Both the position numbers and the translations under genes were made by a program. From assembly GCA_964234715.1 (NCBI GenBank), contig OZ174281.1: a DNA stretch of 64,000 nucleotides; one strand, 5' to 3'. Under the pieces are notes generated by a model that searched no databases, was not told the DNA's origin, and worked only from the letters and a program-made list of their open reading frames with translations. Shown here piece after piece: positions 4,460-39,479 of this stretch; position 1 is the stretch's first letter; each line of letters opens with the position of its first letter. The DNA is from Podarcis melisellensis. Its lineage: Eukaryota.

Positions 4460-4590
4460 GAGTAGAGCATCTGTTTTGCATGCAGAATGTCCCAGGTTCA
4501 GTGTCCAGCGTCTTCAGATGGAACTGGGAATGCTCCCTGTCTGAAGCCTTTGATAGTCACTGCCAGGCTAGTGTAGATAATACTCATCCT
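4460..4590 (+). mobile_element. Old tRNA-derived SINE (Squam2-like; related fragments ~27160-27250 and ~52340-52465)
   Basis: AGTAGAGCATCTG...TTGCATGCAGAA.GTCCCAGGTTCA head and ...GCCAG...GTGTAGATAATACT body. Confidence 0.55.
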
Positions 4591-5404: not shown

Positions 5405-5643
5405 TAGCGTGGTGGTTAAGAGCAGTGGACTCATAATCTGGTGAACCAGGTTCGATTCCCTGCTCCTCCACATGCAGCTGCTGGGTGACCTTGGGCTAGT
5501 CACACTTCTTTGAAGTCTCTCCGCCTCACTCACCTCACAGAGTGTTTGTTGTGGGGGAGGAAGGGAAAGGAGATTGTTAGCTGCTTTGAGACTCCTTAGG
5601 GTAGTGATGAAGCAGGATATCAAATCCAAACTCTTCTTCATCA
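5405..5643 (+). mobile_element. tRNA-derived SINE, Squam3/MIR-like
   Basis: A/B-box-like head (GGTGGTTAAGAGC...GGTTCGATTCCC), CORE-like GGGTGACCTTGGGCTAGTCAC, short trinucleotide tail; near-identical to the copies at 40027 and 57693. Confidence 0.85.
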
Positions 5644-6169
5644 TCATCTGCATGTGGGAGGGACGAGTGCTTTCTCTGTGTGTGGAAGACACTGCTTCCT
5701 GCTGTTGAGGAGGGAGGTGTAAGAGGTACTAAAGCAAAACAATTCAGACAAGAAATGCTATTCACATATAACAAAGTGGGAGGAGGACTTGGGTGACAGT
5801 TATAAGTTACACTTCATAGCATGGCTGTCACCTTCTCTTGCATTTCTGGATGGGCTGCTTTGTCCTGGCAGACCCAGTTGTTGGAGTAGAGTATTGGGTG
5901 TTTTGTATCTGGAATCTGAAGCACTTGTAATGTGCAGTGTGCATAGTTTGCATAGTGGTAACACATCTCTAAAGTTCATTTTTGGTGTTCTGGAGACAAG
6001 CAGTTTGGTATGATGTTCTCTCTTTCTTCCAGTAGTGGTGATCTATGGCATAGTGGGTTATGCTGCCCTCTTGTGCCCCAAACCAAGAAACACAGGCTGT
6101 TGACAGTTACTCTCCTCCTCCTCTTGACCAGCCAATCTCCTGTCTATGCTATGATGCTCTGCTTTCATA

Positions 6170-6345
6170 TCTAGAGGCAGTAATACTTCTGAATACCAGT
6201 TGCTGGGAACCACAGAAGGGGAGAGTTCTTTTGTGCTCAGATCCTGCATGAGGGTTTCCCACAGGCATCTGGCCAGCCACTGTGAGAACAGGATGCTAGA
6301 CTAGATGGGCCATTGGCCTAATCCAGCAGGATCTACTTACATTTT
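6170..6345 (+). mobile_element. CR1-like LINE 3' end (related copies at ~43540-43710 + and ~20927-21025 -)
   Basis: ...GGCATCTGG...CCACTGTGAGAACAGGATGCT...GATGGGCC...ATCCAGCAGG; the 43.7-kb copy ends TTCTTATGTTCTTA. Confidence 0.6.
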
Positions 6346-7493
6346 ATATAGAGTTACTTAAAGAAGACTTATGTGTGAGCTCTGAGATACTGCCCCATAT
6401 CATGCACTCTGTTTCAGTTGTAGCCACTCTCTGTGGGTGTTATATATTGGCAGTGGTGTACAGTTATTGGGTTCTGAAGTACAATGTTCTGCCATGGTGA
6501 AATTGGCAGGGGCAGTCATTGATAAAAGGGTGGCTTAAACAACACACACAACTCCTCAGTGAGACAGCAATTTTTTGCACCAGGTCTAGGGCTGGTATAA
6601 AGTTCCAGTATCAACATGAACATGGCAGCAGTCTGGAGGACTACAGAACAATGTGTAAATATGCCCAAGTTATTTAGCCTGCCATTCTTTACCAGCCTGT
6701 GACGACAGTTGTAGTCTGCATTTCCATGGTGATCACAAGAGATGGGGAAATTCCCATCTCTATGGCCATCATGAAAATTCAGGATACCAGCTTCTCAGCA
6801 GGCCAGTTTTTATTTTTTAAGTATCTAACAAAGAAGAGATATTGCTGAGGGATGGGTTTCCCTGCACTGAAAGGCAGAAACAAAGCAGACTGGCAGAGGA
6901 AGAATGTTGAAGTCCATCCCTTCTTCACCAGCCCATTAACTTTTCTCCATAGAATTCCTGGTGACCTATGGCTACCAAGCAGATAGTTAGGTACAGGGAT
7001 GGTAAGGAACATGGTGTAAATGTCCTCTACCCTTGATCCACCTCTGTCCTGTTCACGACCCCATCCTGTTCTGGCCATTCCATCAGCATATCTTTGTTGG
7101 CAGAGCTGTTCATTCAGCATATTTGGGTATTCTTCCAGCAGCACTGGCATGCCAGTGTCATATCTTGATTTCTGCCAAATACTATAGCCTCACAGTCAAC
7201 AGAACTTAAGGAAAAGATTGCTTTGTAAAATATGTTACAAGAGTTTAATCTCCTGTGTTGCTTAATTTTTTTTATCTTTGGCACCAATCCACAGATTTAG
7301 AGCAATCAAAATAAATCAGTGTACTGTTCTGGAGTGTGTTATGTGTGGATTTCAGCACTGCTGTCCTACCCTGATTTACTTACTGGTATATAATGTCATC
7401 CATGTATATAGCATTTTACAGAGTGAGATGCTTTAAAAAAACAGGTGTCTGTTTACAATCTAATCACCTCCCAAGGCCTGTTTTTAATGTTAA

Positions 7494-7730
<237 letters not shown>

Positions 7731-8600
7731 TAGATAATACACAGACTTTCATATTGGTGTGCATATACAGAAAACAGGACCCTTGCAGATAAGTACAGTT
7801 ATACCTCTCAGTGACCTCCCACTGAGGTTTACGGGAAAAGTAATTTGCAGAGACATGGTTCTGTGAAATTATCTCCTACAACTTTGTCCTCAGCTTAGTT
7901 TTGATGAATCATTTTGCAGATTGATCCTCACATTGGACTAAATGGGGCTTACATCTGATTAGATACGCACAGGATTACACTGTTCATCTCTTATGGTCCC
8001 CCCATAACAATAGCTGGGCGTGTTTTTGAATAAAGCATATTTATTCCTTCCCTGCACACTTCCAATTAACATTTGGATGTCCTTCACATGGGCCAGGTAG
8101 ACACAAACTAAAAACTTGCCAAGCCCTTTGGGATTTAACCAGCAAGTTTTTTGTAGTTTTCCAGGTTTTAAAAATAGAGTTTCATAGAAGACATATATAT
8201 ATAAAACAAGCCTAATTATATATATATTTTTAATAAGCATGTTTCAATCGCTGCTCTTTGGAAGAGTTATTTTACATATCAAATAAAATGAGCTATTGTA
8301 GAGGTGATCTGTCCACTCTGTAAAAGTGTGTGATTTCCTGTATATATTTCAACTGCTATCTACACAGCTTGACAAGAAACCCCAAGAGACAACAGCAACA
8401 CCTAAACACCCACCCCAAAGCCTTTACTTGTAATGAACTTTTTTGCACTTCTTCACACAGTATGTAGTTAAACTGTGGGATCCAATGCCAGAAAACATTT
8501 AAAAGATGGTTAAAAAGAGATAAAACACATGTAACATACATGTCATTTTAAAAGTAATATTCACTGTCATGAATAGTAAATAAATGAATATATTTGTTGA

Positions 8601-13244
<4,644 letters not shown>

Positions 13245-14221
13245 TAATAGAGTGAATTATATGCTCTCAGCAATCTCTTAAACTGTTCAGTTCATTCCAG
13301 TGTAAGCTAATAGAACCAGATTCCTATTCTGCATAGTAGGAGCATGCTGCAACCATGTTACTTTTTGCTTGATAGTTCTGCATGCTCCTTGCCACCCCCT
13401 GTCCCCATCCCATAACAATAGTATATTTTACTTTCTGTATAAACTAAATGAGAAAGGGGATGTTTTTGCGTAAGGAGAATAGCTATGCTGCTGTTTTCTA
13501 CTTTCTTATTAAATGTAAAACAAATATGTATTTTTGATGCAACCAGCTGATGCCAAAAGGGCCAAGAAAATACTCATGAGTAGCATAGTTTGCTTTCCAC
13601 ATTTTTTACAAGATAACTTTACATTGCCCTTTTGGCTCCAGTGATTATGCAACTAGAAAGTTGCTAGGAGGACTTGTTAGCCAGGTTTTTGGAGAAGACA
13701 GATAATGCTGTCAAAAGGTGAAGGGGTTTGGAAGCTTCCACTTCTGTTTAAACATTACATCTGAACCTTAAACTGCAGATTAACTGTTATTATGAACTAC
13801 GGTTTACTCAAGTAAGCCAGCTTCTTAAACTACAATTTGAAATTGGCTTTGTTAAAACTAACTGCAGTTTGTCTGGTTCAGAAGTCAGTCTGAAACAGAA
13901 ACAAGCTTTCAAATTCCTTGCAAGCTGTGCCAGGGAAAAATAGACAAGGCTCACACAGACTTGTCCTATGCCATGGTTTAGCGTTACATATGAATGCAGT
14001 CCATTGCTTTGCATCTGCTTGATGTGCTGCTTTCATATATATAAAGATGCTTCAAACAATGTTTCATGTTAACACAGTAAACTTCATATATTTAATTCCG
14101 TATTTGTGATACAAATATGTGCATTCGGTGACATTTTAAGCACCATAATTTTTTCCTCCAGTTGACTATGTTATGGCTCTTGCTTATGTATACAGTATTG
14201 TATATAAATGATATTGCATGA

Positions 14222-14392
<171 letters not shown>

Positions 14393-14506
14393 TAGGCTGA
14401 TGACTGTATAAAGATGGGCAAGTCTTTTAAAAGTTTTATTGTTTTAAAGAGAAAGGATTAGAATGAAGAAAAACTGTTACATGTTAAGATTTAAGCACAA
14501 TATGTA

Positions 14507-15068
14507 CCGTACTTTTCGCTCCATTGGACGCAGTTTTTCCCCTCCAAAAACTGAGTGGAAATGTGTGTGCGTCCTATGGAGCGAATGCAGGCTTGTGCCA
14601 TAGCCGCGCGCAACCCCTCCAGCAGGGAGAGGCTGCACGGGGCTATGGCTTCTTTAGCCCTACGCTGCTTCTCCCGGCAGGGAGAGATTGCGCGGGGCTA
14701 AAGAGGAAGCCAAAGCAGCCAGTGGGATCCATCCCGCTCGCTGCCTTGGCTTGCTCCATATCTGCATGCAACCCCTCTGGCAGGGAGAGGCTGCACGGGG
14801 CTATGGCTTCTTTAGCTCCACGCAGCCTCTCCTGGCAGGGAGGGATTGCGCGGGGTTAAAGAAGCCAAAACAGCCAGCGCGATCCATCCCGCTCGCTGCC
14901 TTGGCTTGTGCCATAGCCGCGCACAACCCCTCCGACAGGGAGAGGTTGTGCACAGCCTGTACGCTGCTCTTTGGGGCTGGGGGGGGGGAGATTTTTTTTA
15001 TTGATTTCCCCATCTAAAAACTAGGTGCGCCCTATGGTCCGGTGCCCCCTATGGTGCGAAAAATACGG
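14507..15068. mobile_element. Tc2/pogo-like (TcMar) non-autonomous element with ~157-bp internal tandem hairpin repeats
   Basis: TA|CCGTACTTTTCGCTCCAT ... ATGGTGCGAAAAATACGG|TA; TIRs and TA target duplication. Confidence 0.85.
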
Positions 15069-15429
15069 TAGATTGTTAAGAAGTTGTTAAAAACTTGCAT
15101 CTCCAATCAGGACCTATATATACCTGGGAATTCCTTTAAAGAAAAGGAGAGTTTACACTGTGCTAAGAAATTCATACAAGAAGCCATTCTTACCAGGAAG
15201 TTTTGAAAGTTCTACTTAGATTTCTAAGCCAAGTCTCATAGTATTTTCTGTATGAAATCTCTGTAAATGTGCATGTTTATTGGTATGAATTAATAGAGAG
15301 AATTAATAGAATTATTACATTTCAAAAATCTTGAAAGTGTACTTCAGAAAAGGAAAAACAATGATCAAATAGTATTTTAATGAAATTTTGTGTTTTAAAA
15401 CTCTGATTATTATTTTTTTGTTTAACTAG

Positions 15430-15597
<168 letters not shown>

Positions 15598-15681
15598 TAA
15601 GGTTTGGTTTGGAAATAAACCCATAGCTGAAGTTACTTTTTCAAACTAAGTCTAATAAAGTTAACATGAAAACAAGTTTTA

Positions 15682-16281
15682 CCATATTGGCCCGAATATA
15701 AGCTGCACTTTCCCCCATTTTCAGACCCTGAAAGGTTAAAGTGCGGCTTATATTCGTGACTTTTTACCATATGCTGTTGAAAGTGGCTGGGAAGCACACG
15801 CACTCCCTAGCTGCTTGATGGCGGGAGTGGGGGGAGCAGCATCCGCCTCCCAGCTGGTTAGCAGTGTTCACTCCCTAGCTGCTTGGCGGTGGGGGGAAGC
15901 AGCACGACCGCCTCCCAGCTGCTTTCAGGGGGGAGTGGCACGCCTGCCTCCCAGCTGGTTGGCGGGGGGGGAAGCATGCGCAGGTCATCCAGCTACGGAG
16001 CACATGCACCGCCAAAAAGCTGGGAGGTAAGCGCGCACCCCTCAGCTAGGGAGTGCATGCACCACCAACCAGCTGGTAGGTGGGCACCCAGCTCCCCAAG
16101 CCGGTGCCGGCGCTCAGCTCTTGAGTGCGCTGTGTACATTACCACCCTGAACCGCCAGCACCGGCTTGGGGAGCGGGGCGCCGAGTGTCAGCACCGGCTT
16201 GGTGGCCACACCTGCAAATAAGTCGTGAATTTTAAGGGTGTGGCTTATATGTGGGTACAGCATATATTCAGGCCAATATGG
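15682..16281. mobile_element. Tc2/pogo-like MITE with GC-rich minisatellite interior
   Basis: TA|CCATATTGGCCCGAATATAAGCTGCAC ... GTACAGCATATATTCAGGCCAATATGG|TA. Confidence 0.82.
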
Positions 16282-16504
16282 TATTTAAATTTAATTCTAA
16301 TTTTAAAAGTTGCTGATTCAGACAGCATACTGCTAGAGTTCTTTAAGAATTCACATATGAAATTGTTCGTTGAATTGTCTAAACTTCTAGCAACTTGTTC
16401 CTAAAATTATCTTCCTTGCTGGACATTTGGAAGGTACCCATTGTAAAACCAATTTGTTAAAAAGGAATCTGTTGAGGAGAAATTACTCTATTTGGCTAAT
16501 CTCA

Positions 16505-16824
16505 TGATCACATGACAAAGCCATTTTTCACCTTCTCACCCCTTGCTTTTTCCTGTAAGACCTATTGCAGCCGTTAAGAGTCGTCAACAGGCTCATCACA
16601 GCTATCTGCCAATCACCCATTCCTACCACCCTTCTGAGTAATACCCCTCCCCACCTTCTCACTATATAGAAGGGTTTGGTAACTTCTGTTTCAGTGTATC
16701 TGAAGAAGTGTGCATGCACACGAAAGCTCATACCAAGAACTAACTTAGTTGGTCTTTAAGGTGCTACTGGAAGGAATTTTTTTGTTTTGACTATGGCAGA
16801 CCAACACGGCTACCTATCTGTAAC
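16505..16824 (+). mobile_element. Penelope-like retroelement 3' fragment (pseudo-LTR) with 12-bp flanking direct repeat
   Basis: TGGCTAATCTCA at 16493-16504 and 16825-16836; CCAAT and TATA-like motifs, hammerhead motif, and ...TTAGTTGGTCTTTAAGGTGCTAC...GACCAACACGGCTAC end as recalled for reptile PLEs. Confidence 0.82.
16696..16733 (+). ncRNA. Minimal type I hammerhead ribozyme motif (PLE-associated)
   Basis: GTAT-CTGAAGA-A-GTGTGCATGCACAC-GAA-AGCT-C-ATAC: helix I GUAU/AUAC, core CUGANGA and GAAA, helix II hairpin, palindromic helix III, predicted cleavage after C16729. Confidence 0.78.
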
Positions 16825-17073
16825 TGGCTAATCTCAGTCCTAGTTAAATTAGTGGGAAACATTAGGCTAGAATTCTTATATAGAAGAACTGGATGCTGAA
16901 GACAAATTTGCATGGTCTGCAGAGAAGAAAGTTTTTCACTTTTAACTTTTTAAAAATAATGAAAGAGTTTGTGTAAAGTCTTGTGTAAACAGATTTAATC
17001 TGGCTCATGGGAGAATCACTTTTTTCACTCTCCACACTAGGTCAGAAACAGCCTGACTGGAAGAGGCCTAGTG

Positions 17074-17201
17074 CAGAAACGGCAAACCTGTGGACCTCCA
17101 GGTGTAGCTAACTCCCATCAACCTCAGCCAGTATGTCCAATGGTCAGAGATGGTGGGAGTTGTAGTTCCAACATCTGGTGGGCCACAGGTTCCCCATTCT
17201 G
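17074..17201. mobile_element. hAT/Charlie (URR1-like) palindromic MITE
   Basis: Arms AACCTGTGGACCTCCAG...CTCCCATCA / TGGTGGGAG...CTGGTGGGCCACAGGTT. Confidence 0.7.
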
Positions 17202-17313
17202 CACCTAATGGAGACAAGGTCACATTTGGATCCAAACTACTATTTTTCATCACTCTTAACATTTTAAAAATATGGGTCTACCATTTTTAGCATTGGAATA
17301 AATTACTATATAA

Positions 17314-17490
<177 letters not shown>

Positions 17491-18575
17491 TAGAAAGCTG
17501 CAATAAACAATCTAGCACATGGTCTCCTTCACATTCTTTGTGTCATAGCAAATTCAGGAGAAAATAGATAATACATGTTTTAATTCATTAAGTTGCTCAC
17601 ATGTATGGAATAGAACAACACCTGAGTTCCTGCCTCCATGGGTTTCTCAGTTCAGGGAATTTGCAGGGATCACAAACGTGTCAATTTTATTTGTGGAACT
17701 GCCTTAATATTGCACTGAATGAGGAAGCCAGTACTCAGTGAGTAGACTTCATGTATATCAAGGTGTCAGGAGGATATTCTTAGTGTATCCCGTGTATCCA
17801 TCCAAAAGGGTGGGGAAGAAAATATGGAGAAGCCCTGAAGTGCACATGGAAGCATTTCCATTCACCTTAAGAATTCTTTTGAAATCATGCCATTGGCATC
17901 TATGGAATATATGGTGTATGTCTAGAGGGCTTGGACCCAGAATTAAGTGCATGTAACAAGGTTGGCAGTAGCTGACTTCCCCACCCAACCTCCTCTCCAC
18001 AGCAGTTCTCCCAAAATACCTAGAAATCTTTCAGGGGACTCTGCTAAATGGGATGGGCTGTGACACAGAGAGATGAGGGTAAAGGGAGGATACCTGAAAA
18101 TTAGGTGGGGATACTTTTCATGAGCAGATGTCCAGTTCATGGAAGTTGCCTTTTTAATTACACATGCTTAGTACTGGATCTAATTCAGAGTGAACTGCAT
18201 ATGTACAGAGTTGAGAAAAGAAAATGGTGCAGAATGAATATCTTTTTCTAAAGACCCCCTTAAAGCAGGAATAGCCAGCATTTTAAAGCTTTAGGTAAAA
18301 GGAGCTGACGCTTTAGCATCTAATTGCTCTAGGATTGATTTATTAAAAGTGCTAGCATTGTTTTATGGAATATTTAATTGCCTCTAGAATTACAAAAAAT
18401 AAAAACCCTATTCAAAACATGAATAGGCTCACAAGTATAAGATCAAATCGTCTCAGGGGTTTGATTGGCCTGTCGACTGTCAAATTGGCCGTCCCTGTCT
18501 TTGAGAATTCAGTATTCGGTTCACATTAAGGTGTACTTGGAATAATTGACTATTCATCTGTTTATTTTGAAATAG

Positions 18576-18761
<186 letters not shown>

Positions 18762-20010
18762 CTGCTAGCATCTCTTTGCTGTCTGTTACAGCTTAACGTT
18801 GTGAAATATATATGTAATTCGTTTAAAAATATAGCACTAATGTGGAATACAGCCTTTTTCAATCTTCCATATATAACATCAAAATGCTTCACAAAATCTC
18901 ATTCAATGTTGTAAATGTGCATACCATTTATTACAAATGGTATTTATTTTAGATCCTAGGTCCAAAAAGCATCTTCCCAACAGAGCTATTTATGTACAAA
19001 AAAAAAATCTTTCACTGAAGTTTTAACAGCGCTGGCAGCTGTTACAAAAAAATCTGCTGAAAAGCACTTGCTATTTTATGTTCACTTTAATGATTTTTAT
19101 TAAACTTAAACTCCTACAAAAAACAAAACATCAAGCTGTGGGAAATATTACACACTTGTGGGAATGTGGGGAGTGAGGGTCTATTCATCTTATATAATTT
19201 ATAGGTTAACTGTACAGTTTTCTTTTTGGAAAAGATGTAATATTGTTTTCATTTTTTAAAAATAACTTATTTTATACATATTGCGCAATTGTAAATAATC
19301 TTGTATTTAACGTTCAACCCTGTATAAAAATAGATATTTTAATTGTAAAACTGTTTTGTCTAATGTTTTATTGGACCAAAGTTGTTGTTTCTTATGTGTA
19401 GTGTATAGGCAATTTTCTTTTAAAAGGCATGTATTTGATTTAGCTACTTGTTCCATCACCATAACTGTTAAGATTTGAGACTGAGTGGTATTGCATGCTA
19501 GCTCAGTTCAGGTTTTTTCCTACTGTGTGGTACCTAAATGATTGCAACATACGGTGCCAATCCACCAAGCACTGCTTCTGTACAGCATCCATTCATTCAG
19601 AGGAATTTGCATGAGTGTCCCTTTCAGTGTGGTTGCAGCAGTGCTTAATGGATTACACTTTGACTTCCTAGAGCCATTTGTCTTTTGATATGCTGCTGTA
19701 ATCCCATGCCTATGACTTACTATGAAGAGTATTATGTTTAAAATCTTAAAAGATTATAAATCTGCTCTTACATTGTGGTCTCAAAACAAGCCTTTTAGTG
19801 TCCTGCTTCTCCCTTACAAATGCCTCTCAATGAAAAATTGTACATTGTCTATTTTAATATTTACCTATTAAAGCATATGTAAATAGTTGTAAATACAATG
19901 TTTAATAAATTCTATTGGTCATGCTAACAGATGGTTGAATCCTTGTGATGGTGAAATTTTCATTCTTGAAGTTTTATACACTTTGACAAAAATAAATCTT
20001 TGAAAGTTCC
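18762..20010 (+). other. ANKRD12: ANKRD12 3' UTR (approximate)
   Basis: AT-rich sequence after the stop; ATTAAA 19867, AATAAA 19904 and 19991; TGTAAATA at 19290, 19878, 19888. Confidence 0.65.
19904..19909 (+). terminator. Poly(A) signal of ANKRD12 (second AATAAA at 19991-19996)
   Basis: AATAAA preceded by TGTA elements and followed by GT/T-rich sequence. Confidence 0.6.
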
Positions 20011-20257
20011 ATGATAAGATTGTAGTTTTATATTCTGACCAATTCTCCATTTTTTTGTGAAGAACTGACTAATAATATAATGTTCTTATTGTACTATTAG
20101 AATGACTGCCATTATGATTGGATATACGTTATGTGGAGGGAGGGATTCTGGATGTGCCTAGGGAGAGGTGGATCCAAATCCTCAGTCACTATGTCTCAGC
20201 TTAAGCCTATCTGAGCTCCTGGGGGGAACTCTGTTAAGTTGTCCCAGAAGAGTATTA

Positions 20258-20501
20258 TTATTATTTTTTGTTAAATCATTTTAATTAATTTTCCAATAAA
20301 AAAAATCCAATTATCATATCAAATTATAATCCAATTAAAATAAAAAAATAAATTAAAAAGACTAAATTATCATCCAAATTATAATTATTAATTTTTCGGG
20401 ACTTCCCATAGCCTGGACCTTGAAGCATATCTCCAAATCTCAATCCTGCTTCTCCTCGTTGTTTCCATATTTTCCACATCTCGATTTTAATGCTTCAACC
20501 A
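20258..20501 (-). mobile_element. 5'-truncated non-LTR retroelement (L1-like 3' end) with 12-bp TSD
   Basis: AGAAGAGTATTA at 20246-20257 and 20502-20513; A/TAA-rich tail on the minus strand. Confidence 0.7.
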
Positions 20502-23500
20502 AGAAGAGTATTAAAATACATTGCCCTCTGTGTCCTATCCCTGTTGGTGATGGTCAGACCACTCCACTATAAGGGAGTTTGCTCATGCTAAATTTGTCAA
20601 AAAGTTTAGTGTTTTATTTTCCCTAGTGTGAATGAATAACAAACACAAAATTAACCTTCCTTTGTAAGGTTAACAAGAACATTGAGAAACCCTAGTGCCT
20701 TTGGGTGGGAGGAGGTGAAGAGGGGCAATTTTTGCTGCCTCTGATCTGTCTCCCAAATTGGAGGCTCTTTGCCATCTACTCAAGGGAAGCTCATGAAAAC
20801 TGAGTCCATCCCTGTCTGCATAGACTCTTTCATCTACAGAAATGTGTCCCTTAGTCATGCCAAAAGTGTGACTAATGTTTCAAGAGTGTGACACAGAGAA
20901 TGTTGGAAATCGTTAGATAGATGGATTAAGAACATAAAAAGAGCCTTGTTGAAGTAGATTGAGATCCATCTCACACAGCGTCCTGTTTTCAAGTATGGCC
21001 AACCAGATCCCTCTGTGAAGCCTTCCTTATTCTTTGTCTCTGGCACTGTCTATTCCAAAGATAGAATAACTCCAAACAAGGACTTCAATTTGGCTGCTAT
21101 GCTGATTGCTGTTGATAGCTATGTGATGAACTACTATTTCTTGCTATTTTTGTTTTAAACTATTTAATCAAAGTACTTTCTAAGCAGTGTAGAAATTGTA
21201 GATGGAGCATAACTAAACTAATGTGGTCATTGTGCATTTTTGCTGCATGTAGAGGGGATCTGGTTGTAGCATCCAAGTGTATAAACATGTCAAAATTCAT
21301 GTATGTGGAATATTCACACAGGAAGTGTGTGATGCTTTTATTAATTTAGACACAGGATGCTTGTATTAATTCAGAAGCTAACCCAGCAGAATAGGCACAC
21401 AGATTCTTCATTTTCCTATTGCTGATTAAAATGGGATAAGCACAGAAGCAGCAAAGTGGCACAAAGTTTCCCAGCGGGTTTTTGTGTTTTGGCACATTGT
21501 TTGCTCCCAGAGAAATGATGTTTGGAGTATACACGCCACAGGCAAAACACTAAGCTGGAATTTCGCTAGGAACTTCTGTTTCCCATGGACAGTATTCAAC
21601 TATCATGTCCTATCAGCACAAGAATTCCTGCTTCCACAACAGGACTTTCCACCTTCTCCCCACACTTTCCCTGAACCTTCCCTATATCTGCTCCATAGAG
21701 TTGGGGGGACTCCTAGAACAAATTGGGGATGAAATGAAGGTAGGAGAGGGAGAAAACATTCTGTGGCACAAGCAGAAATCCTTGCACTTAAAGGATGTTC
21801 ACATAGTATTACATTGGACACAACTCTACATGTTTATTCACCATGCGGATGTTCTTGACGTTCAGGTTTGAAAAGGATGTTGTTGCTGTTTAGACAGTAT
21901 GATGGGCCAATAATTGCACACTGCTAGCTCTCTGGTTAAGCACCATATAATATTCTATATAGTTCCTTGGGACATCACTCTAAAGTAAGGAATGTAAACA
22001 GTTCCCTGGGGCATCCAACATCAAATTTCAAGAGGCACCATCATGCACATTCTTGTATGTGTGTGTGTGTATAGTTGTGCCACCATGCTTAAAATGCACA
22101 TGCGGAGCTTGGAATCCACAAGAAAATAATAGACACTGCCCCGCCTCTCCTCTTCAGTCACACAAGCAAGTAAAGCAGCATTTGATAAGAAGAGGTTGGG
22201 TGGATAAGGCTTTAGTAGCAGCTGGTGAAAGCTATAGTAGAAGCTGCCCAGTCTCAATAATGGAGAAAACCTAGCCAGCAGACGATAAGGATACTGCTAC
22301 AAAGGACTGTGTGGCAAACTTGTTCAAAGCTAGCAAACCAGGTATTCTTTTTCTTTTTATCTCTCCCCATAGACACCTGTGTGTTTAATACCTTTACGGC
22401 AGGCAGAATTCAGCAGCTTCACTTGCTGAATTTTTGCCTCCCATGTTAAAAGAAAGGCCTAGCGCCCACTTATTTATCATTGTACAAATTACTCACTGGT
22501 GTTAGATGCACTGAGCTCTAATAGAGACAATTATTTTACATCTAGGGAGCAAATATTGTCGGCCTGTTCCCATTTATTTTTATTTTGTCTTTAGGATATG
22601 GTTTTATTTACACATATATGCAACCTGAGCATTGGATGGGAGGGGGTTGGTCTGTTCCCATTTACGTATATGAAACTTCTCTGTACATACGCTGCATTGT
22701 GTATGTGTAAATATTAATAGGAATGTGAATTGGATTATAACCATTTCTTGTCATGATTCAACAAATGAAGCTTTCACTTATTTTCATGTTGGAAGAAACA
22801 TCTACAGAATTTTACAGCTGCTATATACATAGGAAATATATTGTGGTGGGGAAAAATGGTGGTAACCTCATCTTCATTTCAAGTTGTGTTCTAGTGTTCC
22901 TTTTCCGTCATTCTTCTGACACTTTCTTACCTGTCCCAGATGGGATTAAATAATCTACCCACCTCCCAGGGCACATTTATTTTCATGCACCCTCAGTATG
23001 ACTCATGGGATGCCCTTCCTCTCATTTGCAGAGGGAAGAATTTCCCCCCTCTTATTTTCCTTTTTCTTAAATAGAAAGTCAAAATGTTTTTCCCCAGTGA
23101 ATCTGTTTGACCCACTAGGACTTCAATCCTGTGAACATTTGGGAGTAAGCCCCACTGAAAATGAGGAAATACTACAAAGGTTGATTGCCTCTTAACATGC
23201 TTTAACCAGCCACAAATGAAGTAAGATAATGTGTGAGAAAGCATTGGTTTTGCTCCCTCTTTAAAAGTATGGTTATGGATAAAATGGGACTTCTTGGAGT
23301 TTAATGGTGTTGCAGGGGCTAATCACCTGGGTCTTAGTCTTGTAGTTGGCACTTCATGCTGTGCCGTATTATCTCTAAAAATCCACACACTTGATGTCGC
23401 TTAATGTTACAGGCTACTTATTGACCATGTTTTAACCACTCTCTTGTAGAAAACCCATGAGAAGGCGGCAAATTTCTGTTCCACTCATCCATTATATGCT

Positions 23501-24549
23501 TATGAGTGAAGTGGGAATTTTAGTCCATGCTAATCCCCATTAATAGCTTTTATGTTAGATAAAAGTTATGGTGGTAAACAATTTCTACCTGTAATTTGTA
23601 AATTTAATTTGTAATTAATTAATTAATTAATTGTAAATATTGAGGCAGAAATTAAATGACTTTCATATAATCGGATTAACAAAGGTGAGTACAGAATAAG
23701 GATTGCATCTCAATGGTAATTTTGAAACCACTGTCCTATACAGAAAGGATTGAAATACTTATGACTATGAATGAATCATGACCAAATCCATTAAATGGCA
23801 GGTCTCTTCAACTTTCATACCCTTTCTTTCAACCTTTATTCTCTTCATTAATTTATAAAACTGGCTGGGAGCTGTACTGTACAACAGGAGACTGGTTGAA
23901 TGTTGTATGAGCTTACTAATTATAAGAAACGGAGGGAGGCTGTTCCTGAAATAACTAGATCCAGATTACAGTGTAGCTGAAAGGGACAGAGATCTCACCA
24001 TACTGAATTACATAAGAAACCTATGTAGCTTAACATGTTCTTGCCCGTTTGCTAAGATCGGAAATGAGAGGTGTGTTATTGTGTACCTGTTGGCCAAAGA
24101 GACTACTGTCTTTTCTGTGCACAATTACTTAGGAATAAGGCACATTGACAGAACTGGAAATTACTTTTGAGCAAGCATGAATAGGACTGCACTGCACATA
24201 AACTTCTTATTGTGGACCAGCCTATTATTTACATTCATGCCCAGATGGATCCTGAGAAGTTGTTTCTCCTTGAAATGCTAGTAAATGCCCAAATGGGTTG
24301 TGAGCTATAGTCTTTCTTAGACATATTACATTTTTTCACTTACTTTGTTCATCTCTACCCTGTTTGTCCTTGTTCTTGTTTAAGGTGAATTCTGGAATGA
24401 CCTCGCATTTGAAATCTCTAGTTACTGGTGCCCATTGAAATTTGAAGGGTGGAAGGGAGACCAACAATAGGTAGAGCCAAAGCCAGTGACAGGCAGAGCA
24501 AATTCTAATTTTGTTAAAGCGAATTATACCACAGAGGAAGGGACACCGC

Positions 24550-25300
24550 TTGGGCGTAAATTTAACGCTAATTCGGAGGCCTATGCAATGCGCATGCGTG
24601 CTCCTGGCTCAAACCATCCCTTCGCTTCCACACACCCCCTATAAGACTACATCTCCCAAAATGCATCAAACAAAAAAAAAGGGCAGGCGGGACTTTCTAC
24701 CCGTTATATAAAACTAGGGAGAACAAGTGCGCAGGCGCAGGCTCCCTTCTTCGCTCCTCTTGGGTAGCTCGCTCCCTCAGCTACTACGACAGCCCCTCCC
24801 TGTGCGTCATGCGCGTGCGCTGCCTAATTCCGGCCTCTGCCCTCGATAGCCAAAGGGCTGCAAGAAACAGGCCGGAGAAGCAGGGGGGAGGAAAAGAGAA
24901 GGGCGTTCGCGCATGCGCCTCCAAACTGCCTCCTTCTGTTCCCTATACCCGACCTTGTAAGCGGGCGGCGAGGGGATGGGGCGCGGAGCGGGGCCCGGAT
25001 GAGGCCGAAGAGGAGCCAGGCTCAGCACAGCCCTCCTGCCAGCGACGGGCTCCCCACCCACCCGCTCAGGTCAGTGCTGGGGCCATGCTCATGCGCGTGA
25101 GGACTCCCCGCCCGACCCGGGTTCTCCCTCACATCAGCTCCGTTGCCTCCGAGAAGGGGGTGAGGGAGGGAAATGTGGCCGAGCCTGTGGGAGAAGGGCA
25201 TTAACTGAAGCGCTCTCTGCGGCGCGCATGCGCTAGTATCCCTGTGCAGCGCCCCCTAGCGCCTGGGGGCGCCTGGTGACTGAGGCCCCGTTGGGTCTCA
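24550..25300 (+). promoter_or_regulatory. RALBP1: CpG-island promoter and probable non-coding exon 1 of RALBP1
   Basis: CpG-dense; NRF1-type motifs at 24589, 24728, 24909, 25224; ZNF143/THAP11-type ACTACATCTCCCAAAATGCA 24646-24665; CTCF-like CAGCGCCCCCTAGCGCC 25247-25263; candidate donor CAG|GTCAGT at 25069/25070. Confidence 0.8.
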
Positions 25301-29900: not shown

Positions 29901-30758
29901 AGTGGATGTCAGATTTCTCCATCTGATCCATAGTCCCTTTGCTGTAATAGACTTCTACAGGAAAGTCCATTACTGATTGAAGTTTCTACTTGGATGACAT
30001 AGAAGATATAATTTGGAATGGAAAAACCCTAGGTTGCAGACGTTTTCCAAAATAGCCATTGTCATTCTCCTCCTGTCTCATGAACCATGGCATCTACATC
30101 CATAAAATTATGCCAAACTGTAAGCTTTAAAATGTTTTCACAATAGCTTCTGCTCTGTCATGTAACATATACAATGCCAGTAATAACCAAAATATGTAGA
30201 AGAGAATCAGAAACTTTGGGGGTGTACACTTCAAAATAAGCTTTGGGCCACCACAGATTATATGCCTACTCTTCTAGTAGAAACTTCCCAGTGAGGTAGC
30301 ATTGCATTGCATCTCTCTCTGTATCTGTTTGGGGACAAGTTATAACCAAGATAGTGCCACATACCAATCATATCCAAAATAAACAAACTACTGGACTGAA
30401 CTTGATACAGTCTCATAGAAGACACTGTCCTGGATGTATGAGTATATGATTTATGATGAGCCAGAATGTGGGGTGTAAAGGAAATTGTACTTCATGGTTG
30501 CAGTTGAATTTCAGATTTTTAAACTTGAATCTGAATGTATGTGATATCATGAGTAGTCCTCTTTATATCATGTGATGAATTTTTGAGTGAAATTGAGTGT
30601 AATACATATTGAGTGTAATACATATAGAGCTGTATTGAAAGCAGTTTCTCTCACTATAATAGTATTTTGCAGCGACAAAAATACTTTGTGTTCTTTTTAT
30701 TGCAGGCATAATGGATAGGTAACAGGATATTGTTCTACTGTGGTGCCAGAGAGTAAGA

Positions 30759-31002
30759 ATGACGGAGTGCTTCCTGCCTCCCACCAGCAGCCCCAGTGAG
30801 CACCGCAGAGTAGAGCATGGCGGGAGTCTTGCTCGGACCCCGAGCTCTGAAGAAATCAGCCCAACAAAATTCCCTGGCTTATATCGAACTGGCGAGCCAT
30901 CACCACCTCATGACAGCCTGCATGAGCCTCCAGATATTGTGTCTGATGATGAGAAAGAACATGGGAAGAAGAAAGGAAAATTTAAAAAGAAGGAGAAAAG
31001 AA
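30759..31002 (+). CDS. RALBP1: RALBP1 (RLIP76) first coding exon; exon starts at 30706
   Basis: MTECFLPPTSSPSEHRRVEHGGSLARTPSSEEISPTKFPGLYRTGEPSPP...KKKEKR; acceptor tgcag| at 30705, donor A|gtagg. Confidence 0.96.
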
Positions 31003-33890
31003 GTAGGTAGTCCTTCTCCTCTTCCAATCTGTGTGCTACTAGTGTGCTTTTTAGTATTTACGGTTTGCTTTTCATGACTCAATACTTGTGTGCATGTGTT
31101 TTCATGTACAGCACGATCCCATCTTGTGCACAGTTAACGAGTGTGATTTCAGTCTTGCGCAGTTGAAAGCAGGCCAGTTGAAATTGCGTGAATTAATTGC
31201 ACACTTAAAGGCTCCTTTTGCACTGGATTTTCCCAGTGTGGAAAGAGCCTTTAAGCTCTCCATCTTGCTTACCAGGCAAGTCCTGCTCAGTGTGCGAGTT
31301 CTGGGATGCTCTTGCAAGATCTTGTGGGAATGTGGATGCCCCCATGAGATCTCACGAGAGCATCCCAGAGACCACAAGCTGAGCATGACTTGCCCGCTAA
31401 GCAAGGCAAAGAGCTCAAAAGCTCTTCCTTCCTTGGGTATAAGGTCCACTTGGCACATTGCCTTGGGAAGGTAAAGTATGGTCGCACCGTGACAGTTTCA
31501 AGGGGGTGGGCTGAGTATATGGGCCATCTCCAGAGTCTAACCCTGTGCAAGATGTGATTATATTGTAGCCCTTTATATAATTTATTCATTTAGTTTCAGT
31601 GTGTGTGGCACCACAAGTGTAAATGTATTTCATAAGTGCTACAGGTTTTGTTTTTTTGTATGTAAATATTTTCTAAGGCATAAGGTGCTATAAAATCTGT
31701 GCTAATTCTAATCAAATGTTTTGGTATGTGATGCCTTCGTATCCATCAGAGTCTTAAGATTATTTGTAAATCTGCTAAGGCTTTCATGACATCTAAATGA
31801 GGACTATAAAAATATTTCCAAATTGCAGCAGTGACATCATGGCTGTGTATCGACTATCATACCTCATAATTAACTGAGGTATGAACAAGCCTCATGGAGC
31901 CACCTCAGTCCTTCCCTATGATCCAGGAAGTAAGCCTGGAATTCTCAGTTAACCTATAGTTTCCTTATAGGTTTGTACTGGCAAACTATGGTTAACAAAT
32001 TCCAAACAAACCAGGATATTAAACCAACTTTAAACAGTGCCTTAGTATTCCATGCATGTTTGTAAGCATTAAGTGTAGTTTCCTGGTTTGGAAACAATGG
32101 GAAACCCTTGTTAACAGAAACTTGTTGACTTACTTGCCTGCTCATGCAAAGGGAGGAGCAAAACAGCTCTCTGCAAGTGTACGATACTCATTCATATCTT
32201 GGCTTCTTAAGCTAAAGAAAATTACAGTCTGAAGCTAATGCCATCACTGTAAAACAGGTGGGGAACCATTTTCAGCCCAAGGGCTGAATCAGAAATTGGG
32301 CCACCCCTCCATGGGCCTCTTTTTAAGGTGGTTGGGGCAGATCAGCTTATTGGTTCTAAAAGCCCCCTTGAAGTTGTTCATTTACAGGTGCAGTTTGGTA
32401 TGAAACCTCGCTTGCAAATGGACATTTTTCTTTGGCATTTGCAGGTGCAAATGATTAAACAATTAAATATTGCAAGGGGGAGATAGCAGCAATGTCTTTT
32501 CCCAGCCCTGTGCATACTGTGGCCACTACTGCCATCCAACCTGTGTTTAATGTGTAGATAACTAAAGACTGATGAATCGATCTTCTGTTCATTTAAAATT
32601 GTTGACATTAATTTCTCTCTTTGGTTTCCGTTGTGACAGATTCATGTATTGTCTAGCTATCTGAAAATAAATTTATTGCAAAAAATGGCATTAGCAGTAA
32701 AATCTCCAGAGACAACTGTTTTCTAAGCCTTGTCAAAAAGTTCTGAAATTGCTTCTCTAATTGTATTGGGAGTTATGGCTTTTGGCATTTTTATCCACAT
32801 CCACTGTTTCAGCGCTAATTCTACTACATCTGTTCTCCTTCTACAAGTACCATAGCTGTCAGAATGGCAGCTATGGTACTTGTAGAATAATACATTTTTT
32901 AGGGATTGCTAGTTCTCCATTTTTTGTATTTTGCAAGACACATTGGTTAATCAAAGTTTGAATTCTTTTAAAAGTTACATTTTATCTTGGTGCCTTGATC
33001 TGTGGTGAACATTCTGTACTGTGATGCTGTTATATTTTTGTGTATACAGAAGTATCAGTAGGCATTCAGAAAAACTCAAGATGCTTAGCTTCAAATTATG
33101 GATCTAATATTTCAGTAGCTGTTTATTTATTAAATATTTTAAACAAATATGAGAGCCCAGAATTTCAGACTTCAACTGTGTGTTTTTCCTTCTTTTAAAA
33201 GTGGCAGCATTGTTTGCCTGCTGGTTTTTGAAGTAATGTGAAGAATTAGAGTTTCTTAGAGCAGAAGGCTATGAATGTTTGCTTGGAAATAAATCCCACC
33301 ATGTTCAGTGGCGCTTACTCCAAAGTAAGTGTGCATCCCTAGGTCATTTTGGATTTGATTTTTAGTGCAGGGCTGCAGCTGTTGGCTCAAGGCTTGGTTA
33401 GTCTCAGTCCTAGGGCGTAGCAGAAGGCAAGAGATAAAGAAAACTGATTTGTAGAAAGGATTTGGGACATATAGTTGAGCTAAAGGAATGGGTTAAATAA
33501 AGATGTGATATAGTGGAATACTTGCTGGAAACCAGGGCCATTGGTCCAATCGGGGATCTTTTAATCTGGGGATGTTGGGTCAGGTCTTTACTGTGCTGAG
33601 GCAGTTCCCAAATCTCATGTATAGTGAGACAATGGTAGGGTCTTCTCATAACAGAGAAGTTAAAAGTCAGAATTTGGGGTTTGTTAAATCGTTTTTTTAA
33701 AAAAACCAAAGGCTGGAAAAACATGATTTTCTTCTTCATTGAGCATGTTTTTAAAAGGCTGTACCATGGCAATCTATTTATGGACCATATATTCTAGTTC
33801 CAAGTTGGTCCACATCTGTGGATACAGAGTTCTTACCCCCACTTTGGTGGCCTGACATTCATGCTGGAATATCACTTCAGCACTCTAGCA

Positions 33891-34030
33891 CAGTGGGTCT
33901 GCGTAACTCACCCAGGGCACCATTCACATAAAAACTACCATAAATATATCAAAATTTTCAAAAGTAGGGTCCACGGCTTGGTTTTTGAAAAACAGGGGGT
34001 CCACAGTAATTAGCTAATTGGGAACCAATG
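33891..34030. mobile_element. hAT MITE with perfect 8-bp TSD
   Basis: CTCTAGCA|CAGTGGGTC ... GGGAACCAATG|CTCTAGCA. Confidence 0.75.
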
Positions 34031-35884
34031 CTCTAGCAGGTTCTCCATCAAATTTAGTTCAGGGTTTTTTTTTAGCCATTTCCTCCTCTGTCTTAGCATA
34101 TGTGTTGCAATAAGTGATGGGTGTGTTTTAGATATTTATTTTCTTGTTCTTCCCTACAGGGTAGGCAGGGCTAGTTGCAGAAGGGTGTAGCTTATTGGAC
34201 TCCTGTGCATTTATTTCAGAGGCAGCAAAGTAAAGCACCTGATAATTTGCAGCAAAAGCTTTGTTTGTCTTATGGCTGTGGAATTGAACTCTCTTGTGCA
34301 GTTTACATAATCCAAATGGGCACATGTAGTTAGAGATTTGTCAGGATGATTGGGACAACTTTGCCCATGGAACTGAAAAGTAAGTTATTTCTTTTTAGAG
34401 GTTGTACATTAATTTTTTACATTGTAGAATATCTGGTTTGCCTAGAATATCTGGTCTAGCCTTTTTATTCCAAGCAGTTAACTTAGTGGTTTGTGCAATG
34501 CAATCCACTTCTCATTGAAGTCAGTAGCAAAGCTCTCACTCATTTTAATGCAGCAGGATTGTATTATTTGTATTTTTTGCAGGTTGATTTTCAGATGTGC
34601 TTGTAAAGATGTTGAACTGATGCCATGACAGTGTGTTATATTCACTGCAAAAATACATATATTTTTGACATACTAATTTTAACAATAATGATTCTTATAA
34701 TTAATATTTATGATGAAAATAACAAATGTACAAGTTCAAGAAGTTCTGACTAATTTTCTATATTTTTTGCAAGTATGAACAACTGTGTTATAATGCTTCT
34801 TTAATAACAAATGAAAGTTCAAACCATTTATTAGTGGCAAATGTGTGTTGTTTGAATATTGTTTCTGATTGCAATGGTTATTAAATAATTTTATTCACTT
34901 TCATACAACTCTTCTTCCAAGGAACCCAAGACAGGACAGTGTACATGCCCCACCTACACACAGACACACACTAATCCTTATAATAACTTTGTTGAGGTAG
35001 GTTAGGCTAAGATAGGCTTACCAGCCAAATGGCATCCATTAAATTTCCAAAGCTTAGCATGGATTTGAATCTGAGTCTTCCTGCTCATATTCTGCTTCTT
35101 ATCCGTGAGACCCTCCTGGTGGTAATAGAGACTAGCAATAGCTCTTCTACTCATCTTGTTTAACAAAGTCTTTTGCCACCATAATGAGCTTTATATATGC
35201 ACTCATTCATAAATTATCACATATCCCTGTTTGCCTGTTGGCCATCTTAGAAAATAGTAACCAAACTGGAAAATTCATACAACAGGATGCAAGTGTCTAC
35301 CCAAGTAAAATCACATAGGCCTGAATCATATACAAACTTTAAGATTCCCTGCACATTCTGTTTTTTTTACAAGAGTCTACAGCAGATCCTGGAATATTGC
35401 TAAAGGTTTAAGATAAGCAGATATGTGCCATTCATATCACTTTACAGCATCAGTTCTGTATTGATTTTGATGTTACATTTTACTTTAGGAGGAAACGATG
35501 AAAAACATTAAGGTGCCAGTACTAAGTTTACTTCACAGGGAATAACTCCACTGAACACAATAGGATATTCAAGCCTTGGCTTAGGCTTGCATTGCAAGTT
35601 GGAGTTAAACTTCAAACTGTACATTTTTGCATATTGTTGTCAGCAGGTAATCAAGTGATTCTGCTTGTGTATGAAGCTTTCATACCAGAGTAATATTTTT
35701 AAAAATTCATGTACATTATTCAGGGGAAGAAAATACACCAGAATTGTCTCCAAGTCCTGCATAATTCTGCAAATCTGTGTATGTAGCACATTATTGCTGA
35801 GCATTTTTCTGCCTTTTGGCTTTTCTAGGTAGATGATGTGTTTGATATTTTCCCTCCTTCATGTCTTCCTTTTTCTTTTAACAG

Positions 35885-36343
35885 CGGAAGGCTATGCAGC
35901 CTTCCAGGAAGACAGCTCTGGGGATGAAGCTGAAAGCCCCTCCAAGTTAAAGCGCTCCAAAGGGATCCACGTTTTCAAGAAGCCAAGTTTCTCCAAGAAG
36001 AAGGAAAAAGATTTTAAGATAAAAGAAAAACCCAAAGATGAAAAACATAAAGAGGACAAGCACAAGGAGGAAAAACATAAAGAGAAAAAATCTAAAGACT
36101 TGACAGCAGCGGATGTTGTGAAACAATGGAAAGAGAAGAAGAAGAAGAAGAAACCAGCTCAGGAGGCAGAGATACCGCAGGTGGATATTCCCAGGCCTCG
36201 CCCTGTGTTTGGTATCCCTTTGGCAGATGCAGCAGAAAGGACCATGTTGTATGATGGCATCCGCCTGCCAGCAGTTTTCCGGGAATGTATAGATTACGTA
36301 GAGAAATATGGCATGAAATGCGAAGGCATCTACAGAGTTTCAG
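35885..36343 (+). CDS. RALBP1: RALBP1 coding exon 2, start of RhoGAP domain
   Basis: aacag|CG...TCAG|gtata; EGYAAFQEDSSGDEAESP...PVFGIPLADA...LPAVFRECIDYVEKYGMKCEGIYRVS. Confidence 0.97.
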
Positions 36344-38835
36344 GTATAGTGGCCCAACTGAAGGTAGCTTTCCTCTGCTTTGCCTCCTGTCTTTTGACCC
36401 AAAGGGCATGGTGGGGCTCTCCACCTTCACATTGCCCAAAACTTCATGTGACTTTGTAAATGCCTGCAGCTTCCTAAAACCAAGCTGCTGTTGAATTTAG
36501 GCTAGCTCTAAATTTAAGGCTGGAAGGATTGCTGATAAGCAGGTATGATTGAAAAATGATTTAGCCTGCTTATATATATTAAAGTTCAAGAGGTTAAAGA
36601 CACAATTCTACATACATCCGCCGTTTGTGTTCGGTGTTGCTTGCTGCTGGGTAAATGTTCATTTTTTAAATCTAGTTCATAAAATTTACAAATTGCTTGA
36701 TTGTGGTTGTTGTTTTTTTAACAAGTTACATATAATAGCACTGCAATTAAGACTGCAAATTTTATGCCCAGTTTCCTATAAGTAAGCCTTTGAATTTGAC
36801 TGGATTTCCTTTTCAATGAACACATAAGATTATGCCGTAAGTTAGCAAATCTAGTCTTTTGCATTTGAGGGCACAGTGTCTTATCAGATCCATTAAAGTC
36901 ATGCTTCCCTAGAGTGGCACTGATTTTCAAGCGGTTTCCTCAGCCATCTGCCACAACCTGCTTGCTGAGTAGAGCAATTGAAAAAAACAACAACATGGTT
37001 CAGTCTTTCTGATAGAAAGAGAAAACTGGCATGTGGCACTTCCCAACTGCATTCCTCACAACGCTTGCTCTGGAGTAGTGACTTCAGTATGTATAATGGT
37101 ATAGAGTGGTGTAAGTAGCTTGAGGACTGTGAGAATATAACCTAATCAGAGATGTTAAGAACCTTGCAGTTGTTTGCTATATATTTTTAATTATGTTGTA
37201 TAAAAGATTCAGGGCTAGCAAGTAAAATAGTGATTTGTCAAGTGGCATATGGTGGGGAGAGAACATATTCTTCAGCTGTTTTTCCCTCCTACACTTTCAT
37301 TTTGACTTTCTTCCAAATGGAATTTATACACAAAGTCCTCATTAGCTGGTATCTTGGGAAAAAACAGGGGAAATGTTGCAATAGCAGTTGAGGATTTAGC
37401 TTGGATTTGAAGAAAACACCCCGGTGGTAATGCCAAGATAATTAGCAGCCACAGTAGTTGTGTAACCCTTGATCCACATAAAAGTAACAATGATTCGAGT
37501 CATTTATTTAATTATACAGCTGTATTTTGAATTGTGAATGCCACCTGTGAGAGGCATCATGCTCGTGATCGAAATGCAGTGCACGAGCTGTTTTGACAGG
37601 AACTGAAATGCAAATTCCAAGGCGGAATTTAAAGACAAAACTGCACAGGAAGTAAATATTTTGAAGAGATGTTTAGTGCAAACATTGCACATTAGTGAAA
37701 CATAAATATGAAAGCATAGCCACACTTTTATTGACACTATGTCACTATTTCTTGCAGAAATATAATTTTCTGATCCTTGAGGTTCATAGGTTTATATCCT
37801 TTACTATGCCAGGCTGTGCTACAGTATGACCATGACAGTGTAAAGTGTCCTTCTCTGGGTAGTAGATATGGATACTGCTTGGAATTTAAGCTTGAAAGGG
37901 AATTTGTGCAAGCATTGGAAAGTGTTCGGGCAAGTCTGAACAATGCAGAAAAGTGAAGTACTCTGATTATAACTGACTTGTAAATAAGTCCATAAAAGTT
38001 AGTATCCTGCAACCTTGCTTTATTTTATTTTTTACTAACCTGCTAGTTTCTAAGCTGGCCAGGGAGGAGGGAAAGCCCCTCCTCTTAGCAGACTAGTGGT
38101 GTGGATAGGTGTTTAAGCCTTCTGCATTTCTGTGCCTGTCCTTCCTCAGTGGCTAGCATGGAAACCGAACACACTGGCAGAGGACAGCAGAGCAGTTTGT
38201 CTCTCCTCTACCAGTGTGCTCATTCATCAGCATAGAATTCCATGCACTTGCCTGCATGGAATTTTAGTGGCCTTTGATGACCAGGTGTGTTCTTAGAAAT
38301 AAGGATTGAAAGTGGATAGTGTACAACACATCAGAACATGGGTGTGGTTTATTATTATTAAACAGATCAAAGAGATGGTCGAAATTCCAAATCAAAAAGT
38401 CACCATCCAACCACTATCTCTGCTGTTTCTCCTCTACCTGCTTTTGCTGTAAATTGGAGACCCTGGATGCACCCACAAAATACACAAAACTATGGTTTAA
38501 CACCCAAGGGTGAGCCTGAGTGACTTGTCAGGCTTGCATGCATCGTTCTCTTCCGTCATGGTCTTGAGGTGCATTTTGGCAGAGTTTAGTTTCACAGAAT
38601 CCTGGATCATTACTACATTTGAAACATGGATTCTAATTTAAAACAAACTGGCAAGTTTCATAACAAGCTGGTGTCAGACTGTGGGTTTGTTCTGCTTGGA
38701 CTTGTTCTGGCTCATCCATGCCGTGCTAAACCATGCAGACACAGCCTAGTGCACCTTCCTTCCTTCTTCCATTGTACACCACACCCTTATCTGCAGTCAG
38801 CATGCTGTAGTGTTATTTCTTGAGTTAAGAGCCCA

Positions 38836-38940
38836 GGGTGGTATTCCAACAAAGTTTTCCTGAGAGCAGACCTATTGAAATTAATGAATCAACTAAGGTA
38901 GGTCCATTCATTTCAATGGGTCTGCTCTGAATAAAACTTA
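38836..38940. repeat. Short palindromic MITE-like element (related copy ~62868-62955)
   Basis: AAGTTTT..GAGAGCAGACCTATTGAAAT / ATTTCAATGGGTCTGCTCTGA..AAAACTT inverted arms. Confidence 0.65.
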
Positions 38941-39069
38941 CTTTAGTACTTTCCCCGGTGTTTTGTGACTTTGCAAAATGAAGAGAGTGCTTTACATGTG
39001 TGATTGCTCTATTTTTGTATGTTTTTGGAATTATTTTGTGAAATCATTCTATTTTTTTTTTTTTTTTAG

Positions 39070-39419: not shown

Positions 39420-39479
39420 GTATGCATAATAGGCTCTCTCTTTCCCTACTTCTCTCTCTCTCTCTATATATATATATAT

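Follow-up and report, generated by a model that had tools for sequence, protein, structure and literature searches.

TWSG1 is absent from its expected slot between ANKRD12 and RALBP1 in the lizard Podarcis melisellensis

The human gene order at 18p11.22 is ANKRD12-TWSG1-RALBP1-PPP4R1. TWSG1, a gene of four coding exons that is conserved from insects to mammals, tunes bone morphogenetic protein (BMP) signalling together with Chordin and Tolloid in gastrulation and in craniofacial, bone and blood development. In birds, synteny has led to the inference that conserved genes were lost in single lineages, and many of these avian "missing genes" were later traced to gaps in the assembly of GC-rich sequence. 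Here, we analysed a stretch of 64,000 nucleotides from Podarcis melisellensis (contig OZ174281.1, assembly GCA_964234715.1; hereafter the window), for which an original prediction made from the sequence alone had claimed that TWSG1 is missing between ANKRD12 and RALBP1. We confirmed that TWSG1 is absent from this slot. Our preferred explanation, to which we assign a probability of about 0.5, is an interstitial deletion of the TWSG1 segment in the common ancestor of lacertids and toxicoferans.

ANKRD12 and RALBP1 both lie on the + strand, and their RNA-defined ends are 4.8 kb apart. Two DNA runs and two RNA runs were mapped over positions 19,500-25,400. Together with tblastn searches using P. 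muralis proteins, they place the following features in and around the slot:

18762..19933, + strand: 3' untranslated region (UTR) of ANKRD12, defined by RNA, ending past AATAAA 19904-19909
19934..24766, no strand: intergenic spacer of 4,833 bp (GC 0.39), the expected TWSG1 slot, without a gene, bounded by the RNA-defined gene ends
~24,400-25,400, + strand: CpG-island promoter of RALBP1 (GC 0.53-0.69, CpG observed/expected (o/e) 0.5-0.9)
24767..25069, + strand: non-coding exon 1 of RALBP1, from an RNA contig whose start makes the 5' end a minimum
30706..31004, + strand: exon 2 of RALBP1 with the ATG at 30759, from the RNA join, the AG acceptor and tblastn

The gap had initially been put at about 4.5 kb, which was right in that it is small but slightly short of the RNA-defined 4,833 bp. 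Stranded RNA of a sister species covers the + strand of the ANKRD12 3' UTR as far as ~19,990 and is near zero from bin 19,894-20,090 onward. The poly(A) site lies at ~19,933, where an RNA contig stops and continues as adapter, 24 nt past the AATAAA at 19904; a second AATAAA at 19991 lies beyond this RNA end. Within the spacer, RNA was found only over a 200-bp high-copy repeat, with reads from other copies, and elsewhere as traces at a depth of ~2. The poly(A) site and the CpG-island promoter, 4.8 kb apart, can thus function side by side, as no read-through from ANKRD12 to RALBP1 was visible in the RNA.

TWSG1 proteins carry an N-terminal cysteine-rich BMP-binding domain with ~15 cysteines in ~50 residues, and a C-terminal cysteine-rich domain with the motif RWFHxxCCEC. 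None of the six-frame stop-to-stop pieces of the window had a TWSG1-like cysteine density; the cysteine-richest pieces came from (TG)n microsatellites or low-complexity sequence and from the reverse strand of a RALBP1 exon. Regular expressions for loosened forms of two TWSG1 motifs matched nothing in the six-frame translation of the window, and the C-terminal motif had no match in any of the fetched flanks either. Likewise, a Pfam scan of the 101 translated pieces from 19.9-24.7 kb that are 28 aa or longer, run without a positive control, returned no Tsg family match at E-values up to 1, and the best matches of these pieces were at chance level, with E-values of 0.01 or worse. Cysteine density, motif and Pfam searches therefore agree with the original prediction that the window holds no TWSG1-like exon. 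A very diverged or decayed TWSG1 could still sit in the spacer, given that the Pfam scan had no positive control and covered pieces above a length threshold only. However, a spacer of 4.8 kb leaves very little room for a gene with four coding exons, it contains neither a cysteine-rich piece nor RNA other than that described above, and between Podarcis and Lacerta it evolves at about the rate of RALBP1 intron 1 (91-92% identity). We give hidden exons hardly any chance.

Outside the lizard sequences, a last TWSG1 exon of mammalian type was seen in two metagenome contigs, Ga0065710_10053132 (L010 1159-1377) and Ga0065711_1042621 (L011 4960-5178). It is probably host or human contamination in both, and the two contigs were set aside and not used.

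The spacer itself contains the following elements, none with an assigned strand:

20091..20681: interspersed repeat in high copy number, in part A/T-rich, at a depth of 76-1,464x against a baseline of 9-13x; unitigs break here
21023-21102, 21834-22050, 22415-22736 and 23008-23130: conserved non-coding blocks (blastn), their order unchanged downstream of Elgaria ANKRD12
22455..22651: short high-copy repeat at a depth of ~2,000x, with RNA reads that have loose ends on both sides
~23,602-23,640: (TAAT)n run, a repeat at which a unitig breaks
23841-23919 and 24001-24073: conserved blocks found downstream of the ANKRD12 3' UTR in Anolis (blastn against L002 51596-51671 and 54181-54253)

The gap had been described as holding transposable element fragments. 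This is correct for about 0.8 kb (20,091-20,681 and 22,455-22,651) and wrong for the remainder, which is single copy in DNA depth; no further copy of the spacer occurs in the window. Positions 20,257-20,499, inside the first repeat, are missing from the Lacerta alignment, while the short repeat has loose ends at 22586-22639 in all runs. The four Elgaria blocks matched L001 50200-56829 at 67-78% identity (blastn E-values of 1e-8 to 1e-14) and lie within 9 kb after ANKRD12.

The missing TWSG1 is not an assembly artefact. As had been stated for the gap, there is no N, and this is true of the entire window. A separate study of this species provided an independent DNA run, which gave single-copy depth (9-13) in 30 out of 30 bins. 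The unitigs of this run span 19,500-20,297, 20,462-22,625, 22,603-23,601 and 23,641-25,400, with breaks only at repeats. Moreover, an independent long-read assembly of Lacerta agilis is collinear with window positions 18,000-29,205 at 91-95% identity and without N. This collinearity reaches from the ANKRD12 3' UTR to RALBP1 intron 1, and includes a spacer of ~4.6 kb that is 91-92% identical. The depth of the independent run and the collinear Lacerta assembly thus uphold the earlier view that the absence is real.

For the assembler to have dropped a TWSG1-bearing sequence, a collapse or misjoin would have to lie between 19 and 26 kb. Short-read unitigs do break at three spacer repeats (20.3-20.5, 22.6 and 23.6 kb), and no single record bridges the spacer. 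Against this stand the single-copy depth in every bin, the presence of the same stretch in the sister species, the N-free Lacerta assembly with the same order and the same small spacer, and the adjacency of ANKRD12 and RALBP1 in Anolis as well. Taken together, these make a collapse extremely improbable. As a separate observation, sister-species contigs extend to 22,625 in the spacer and resume at 24,408. The sequence at 22652-24400 that falls between them is present in the window species and in Lacerta; it may be deleted in the sister species, or the gap may merely be a filtered hole.

The CpG island at the far end of the spacer belongs to RALBP1. An RNA contig of 1,434 nt (depth 253) spans 24,767-25,070 and then jumps to 30,707, and its stranded reads are from the + strand. 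The intron that it skips is of the GT-AG type, with the GT donor at 25070 and the AG acceptor before exon 2. Because the CpG-island exon splices to the RALBP1 ATG exon, it is the first, non-coding exon of RALBP1. In the skink Tiliqua scincoides, the island at RALBP1 exon 1 (L003 2231-2663) is homologous to that of the window (24,771-25,261; E-value of 5e-44), and Lacerta agilis has a CpG island at the corresponding position (L012 47991-48990). The splice to the ATG exon and the homology to the RALBP1 island of Tiliqua identify the single CpG island as the promoter of RALBP1 itself, and leave the suggestion that it might descend from the TWSG1 promoter without support.

Tiliqua has an extra, non-repetitive CpG island (L009 61880-62520; CM068527.1 ~59,942,740-59,943,380) with a GC content of 0.63-0.74 and a GTAAGG donor on the + strand. 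It lies 7.7-8.4 kb past the ANKRD12 3' UTR and 26.5 kb upstream of the RALBP1 island. Aligned to the window island, it showed no homology except a short interspersed repeat match. Two readings of this extra island are possible, a TWSG1 promoter and an alternative first exon of RALBP1. We did not retain the former, as the island has no detectable homology to the gecko flank or the window and could equally be the latter.

Two other features were noted close to these islands. Positions 25963-26471 in RALBP1 intron 1 form a 508-bp block rich in GC and CpG (GC up to 0.68, CpG o/e 0.7-0.8) that is absent from the Lacerta agilis alignment. The block was either inserted on the Podarcis side or deleted in Lacerta, and it adds a second island-like peak ~1 kb past exon 1. 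An element of ~80 bp, probably a squamate short interspersed element (SINE) fragment, occurs beside CpG islands in several lizards: at 25495-25571 in the window, at L012 49052-49129 in Lacerta, and at L003 2883-2967 and L009 61804-61880 in Tiliqua.

A synteny comparison across squamates, as proposed in the original prediction, showed that ANKRD12 and RALBP1 are arranged compactly in Lacerta agilis and Anolis too. Distances were measured between the stop codon of ANKRD12 and the ATG of RALBP1:

Window: 12.0 kb, of which the spacer is 4.8 kb
Anolis carolinensis: 28.4 kb (CM069370.1, 61,788,063 to 61,816,466); 10-kb flanks viewed, middle 8.4 kb outside the view
Tiliqua scincoides (skink): 43.3 kb; middle 23.3 kb outside the view
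Gekko japonicus: 75.4 kb; middle 55.4 kb outside the view

In Anolis carolinensis, no gene was called in either 10-kb flank of the interval, where 18.7 kb of sequence was viewed. The compact adjacency is probably also found in Elgaria, where the conserved spacer blocks are collinear, and in the cobra Ophiophagus hannah, where the GenBank protein numbers of ANKRD12 and RALBP1 are consecutive. RefSeq protein numbers of the two genes are likewise consecutive in A. carolinensis and A. sagrei. They are near-consecutive in Lacerta agilis, with one number unaccounted for, and in P. muralis 14 unexplained numbers fall between them. In Gekko, a single accession, XP_015262092, lies between the two genes and could be TWSG1 or a third ANKRD12 isoform. 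The next gene past RALBP1 in the other squamate loci fetched is a PPP4R1-like HEAT-repeat gene, arranged tail to tail with RALBP1. The absence of TWSG1 had been placed "in this lineage". While the absence itself stands, that scope was too narrow, since the adjacency is common to Lacerta, Anolis and probably Elgaria and the cobra. As it occurs in both lacertids and toxicoferans, it is at least as old as their common ancestor, and we conclude that it predates the Lacertoidea-Toxicofera split.

The skink and gecko intervals are much larger than that of the window, although the genes themselves are just ~1.2-1.5 times longer. These intervals are big enough to contain TWSG1, the presence of which there is a guess. 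The contrast bears on whether the order in the reptile ancestor was the human one. If TWSG1 was never located between ANKRD12 and RALBP1 in that ancestor, nothing was lost, and it is true that TWSG1 was seen in the slot in no sauropsid examined, with the turtle flanks (L004 and L005) stopping short of it. Conversely, the human order has TWSG1 between the two genes, the gecko and skink intervals exceed the 12 kb of the window far more than the lengths of the genes do, and the skink has its extra island and splice donor past the ANKRD12 3' UTR. We therefore regard a different ancestral order as highly unlikely.

The preferred explanation runs as follows. The TWSG1-bearing segment between ANKRD12 and RALBP1 would have been removed by an interstitial deletion in the common ancestor of lacertids and toxicoferans, the latter including iguanians and probably anguimorphs and snakes. 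ANKRD12 and RALBP1 would thereby have become direct neighbours in their original head-to-tail orientation, and the lacertid spacer would later have shrunk to 4.6-4.8 kb. RALBP1 would have retained its own CpG-island promoter and first exon, and ANKRD12 would still end at its own poly(A) site. We infer that a deletion was the mechanism, that it happened once and long ago, and that these genomes retain no functional TWSG1 at another site. Since the neighbours are rejoined in the same order and orientation, one deletion would suffice, while moving a single gene takes more steps.

Alternatively, TWSG1 may have been copied or transposed elsewhere and the original lost, so that lizards keep a working gene at another site. 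The strong conservation of TWSG1 across bilaterians makes its retention likely, and a copy elsewhere is compatible with all our results, as the slot would look alike after deletion and after relocation. On the other hand, relocation requires a duplication or transposition as well as a clean loss that left the neighbours in place and in the same orientation. In Elgaria, Anolis, Tiliqua and Gekko, neither the 10 kb before ANKRD12 nor the 10 kb after RALBP1 showed a trace of TWSG1, and the next gene past RALBP1 is PPP4R1-like, as in human. In flanks of up to 10 kb, no TWSG1 exon was reached in the ANKRD12/RALBP1 loci of these four, of Lacerta or of two turtles. Nor did we find a relevant paper on TWSG1 in squamates (lizard, snake, Anolis or gecko) in the literature searched, supplements included. 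We view relocation as a serious contender at somewhat less than even odds.

Several points weigh against the proposed deletion. Because TWSG1 is conserved from insects to mammals, its complete disappearance from a large clade is improbable a priori. A TWSG1 copy may lie elsewhere in these genomes or transcriptomes, as the search covered the window and the fetched flanks. In Anolis, 8.4 kb of the ANKRD12-RALBP1 interval lies outside the stretches viewed, and the Elgaria flank ends short of the RALBP1 promoter and CpG island. The ancestral sauropsid state is taken from the human order and the larger skink and gecko intervals. Finally, newer annotation releases (Tiliqua and Rhineura) number accessions sparsely or without regard to position, so that accession order is weak evidence of adjacency. 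Weighing these points, we lean slightly towards deletion over relocation. That the squamate ancestor of lacertoids and toxicoferans lost TWSG1 outright, so that most lizards and all snakes lack it, is a tentative proposal that we place just under an even chance; geckos, and perhaps skinks, may still carry the gene in the old slot.

The orthology of the two flanking genes is well established. Their coding exons were searched singly, without a joined spliced protein model, using tblastn with the P. muralis proteins. All of the following are on the + strand:

1719..18761: 3' part of the ANKRD12 gene
1719-1871, 2562-2765, 3813-3968 and 7527-7712: first four ANKRD12 coding exons within the window
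8622-13226, 14237-14335, 15430-15579, 17269-17463 and 18576-18758: remaining coding exons of ANKRD12
18759-18761: ANKRD12 stop codon TGA, directly after the last coding exon
30759..49811: RALBP1 coding region, in nine tblastn blocks, with the stop codon TAA at 49809-49811

The large ANKRD12 exon corresponds to a long open reading frame (ORF) at 8670-13247 (+ strand) that is 99% identical to P. muralis ANKRD12 over 1,517 aa, which by itself marks the genome as that of a lacertid near Podarcis. Identity in this exon falls to 86% in Rhineura, 72-83% in other squamates, and 60-68% in turtles, crocodilians and birds. The identity to P. muralis and the tblastn exon map support ANKRD12 orthology for the large central exon and the C-terminal exons. 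Elgaria, Anolis, Gekko and Tiliqua share the 3' UTR at 81-87% identity. RALBP1 has the expected domain pair in Pfam, a RhoGAP domain (PF00620, E-value of 1.8e-30) followed by the RLIP76 Ral-binding domain (PF20924, E-value of 7.6e-20). Most of its nine blocks are 95-100% identical to P. muralis RALBP1, with lower values where alignments overrun exon ends.

Two further regions of the window stood out. The ANKRD12 intron sequence at 14501-16200 has GC-rich stretches with long repeated open frames on both strands (e.g., 14524-15017 and 15815-16221), likely a repeat family, and one 500-bp bin within it meets the CpG-island filter. A CpG-island-like stretch at 62001-62500 (GC 0.53, o/e 0.66) lies ~12 kb past the RALBP1 stop, where other squamates have the PPP4R1-like gene on the minus strand.

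The interest of the finding hinges on whether TWSG1 was lost or relocated. If it was lost, a core gene of dorsoventral patterning would have disappeared from a whole clade without this having been reported, and most lizards and all snakes would pattern their embryos in the absence of a factor regarded as general among bilaterians. This would raise the question of compensation, for instance by BMPER, by chordin-like genes or by a changed use of Tolloid, with geckos as a natural comparison group. If TWSG1 only moved, the locus would represent a single-gene relocation with a 5-kb scar, relevant mainly to annotation and to synteny-based orthology.

Compared with human 18p11.22, the window has ANKRD12 and RALBP1 in the same order and on the same strand, and a PPP4R1-like gene follows RALBP1 in other squamates. 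It differs in lacking TWSG1 and nearly all of both intergenic regions, which leaves the two genes 4.8 kb apart. Gekko japonicus and Tiliqua scincoides share the two genes, their order and strand with the window, and their ANKRD12 3' UTRs are 82-83% identical to that of the window. Their coding sequence-to-coding sequence intervals of 75.4 kb and 43.3 kb, respectively, contrast with 12.0 kb here, and the skink has a second CpG island. Like the "missing genes" of birds, the locus lacks a conserved gene in a conserved slot with its neighbours retained. Unlike in many of the bird cases, the region is AT-rich and free of N, has single-copy depth and is reproduced in an independent assembly. The absence of TWSG1 from its slot adds another case to a class of event that is already known.

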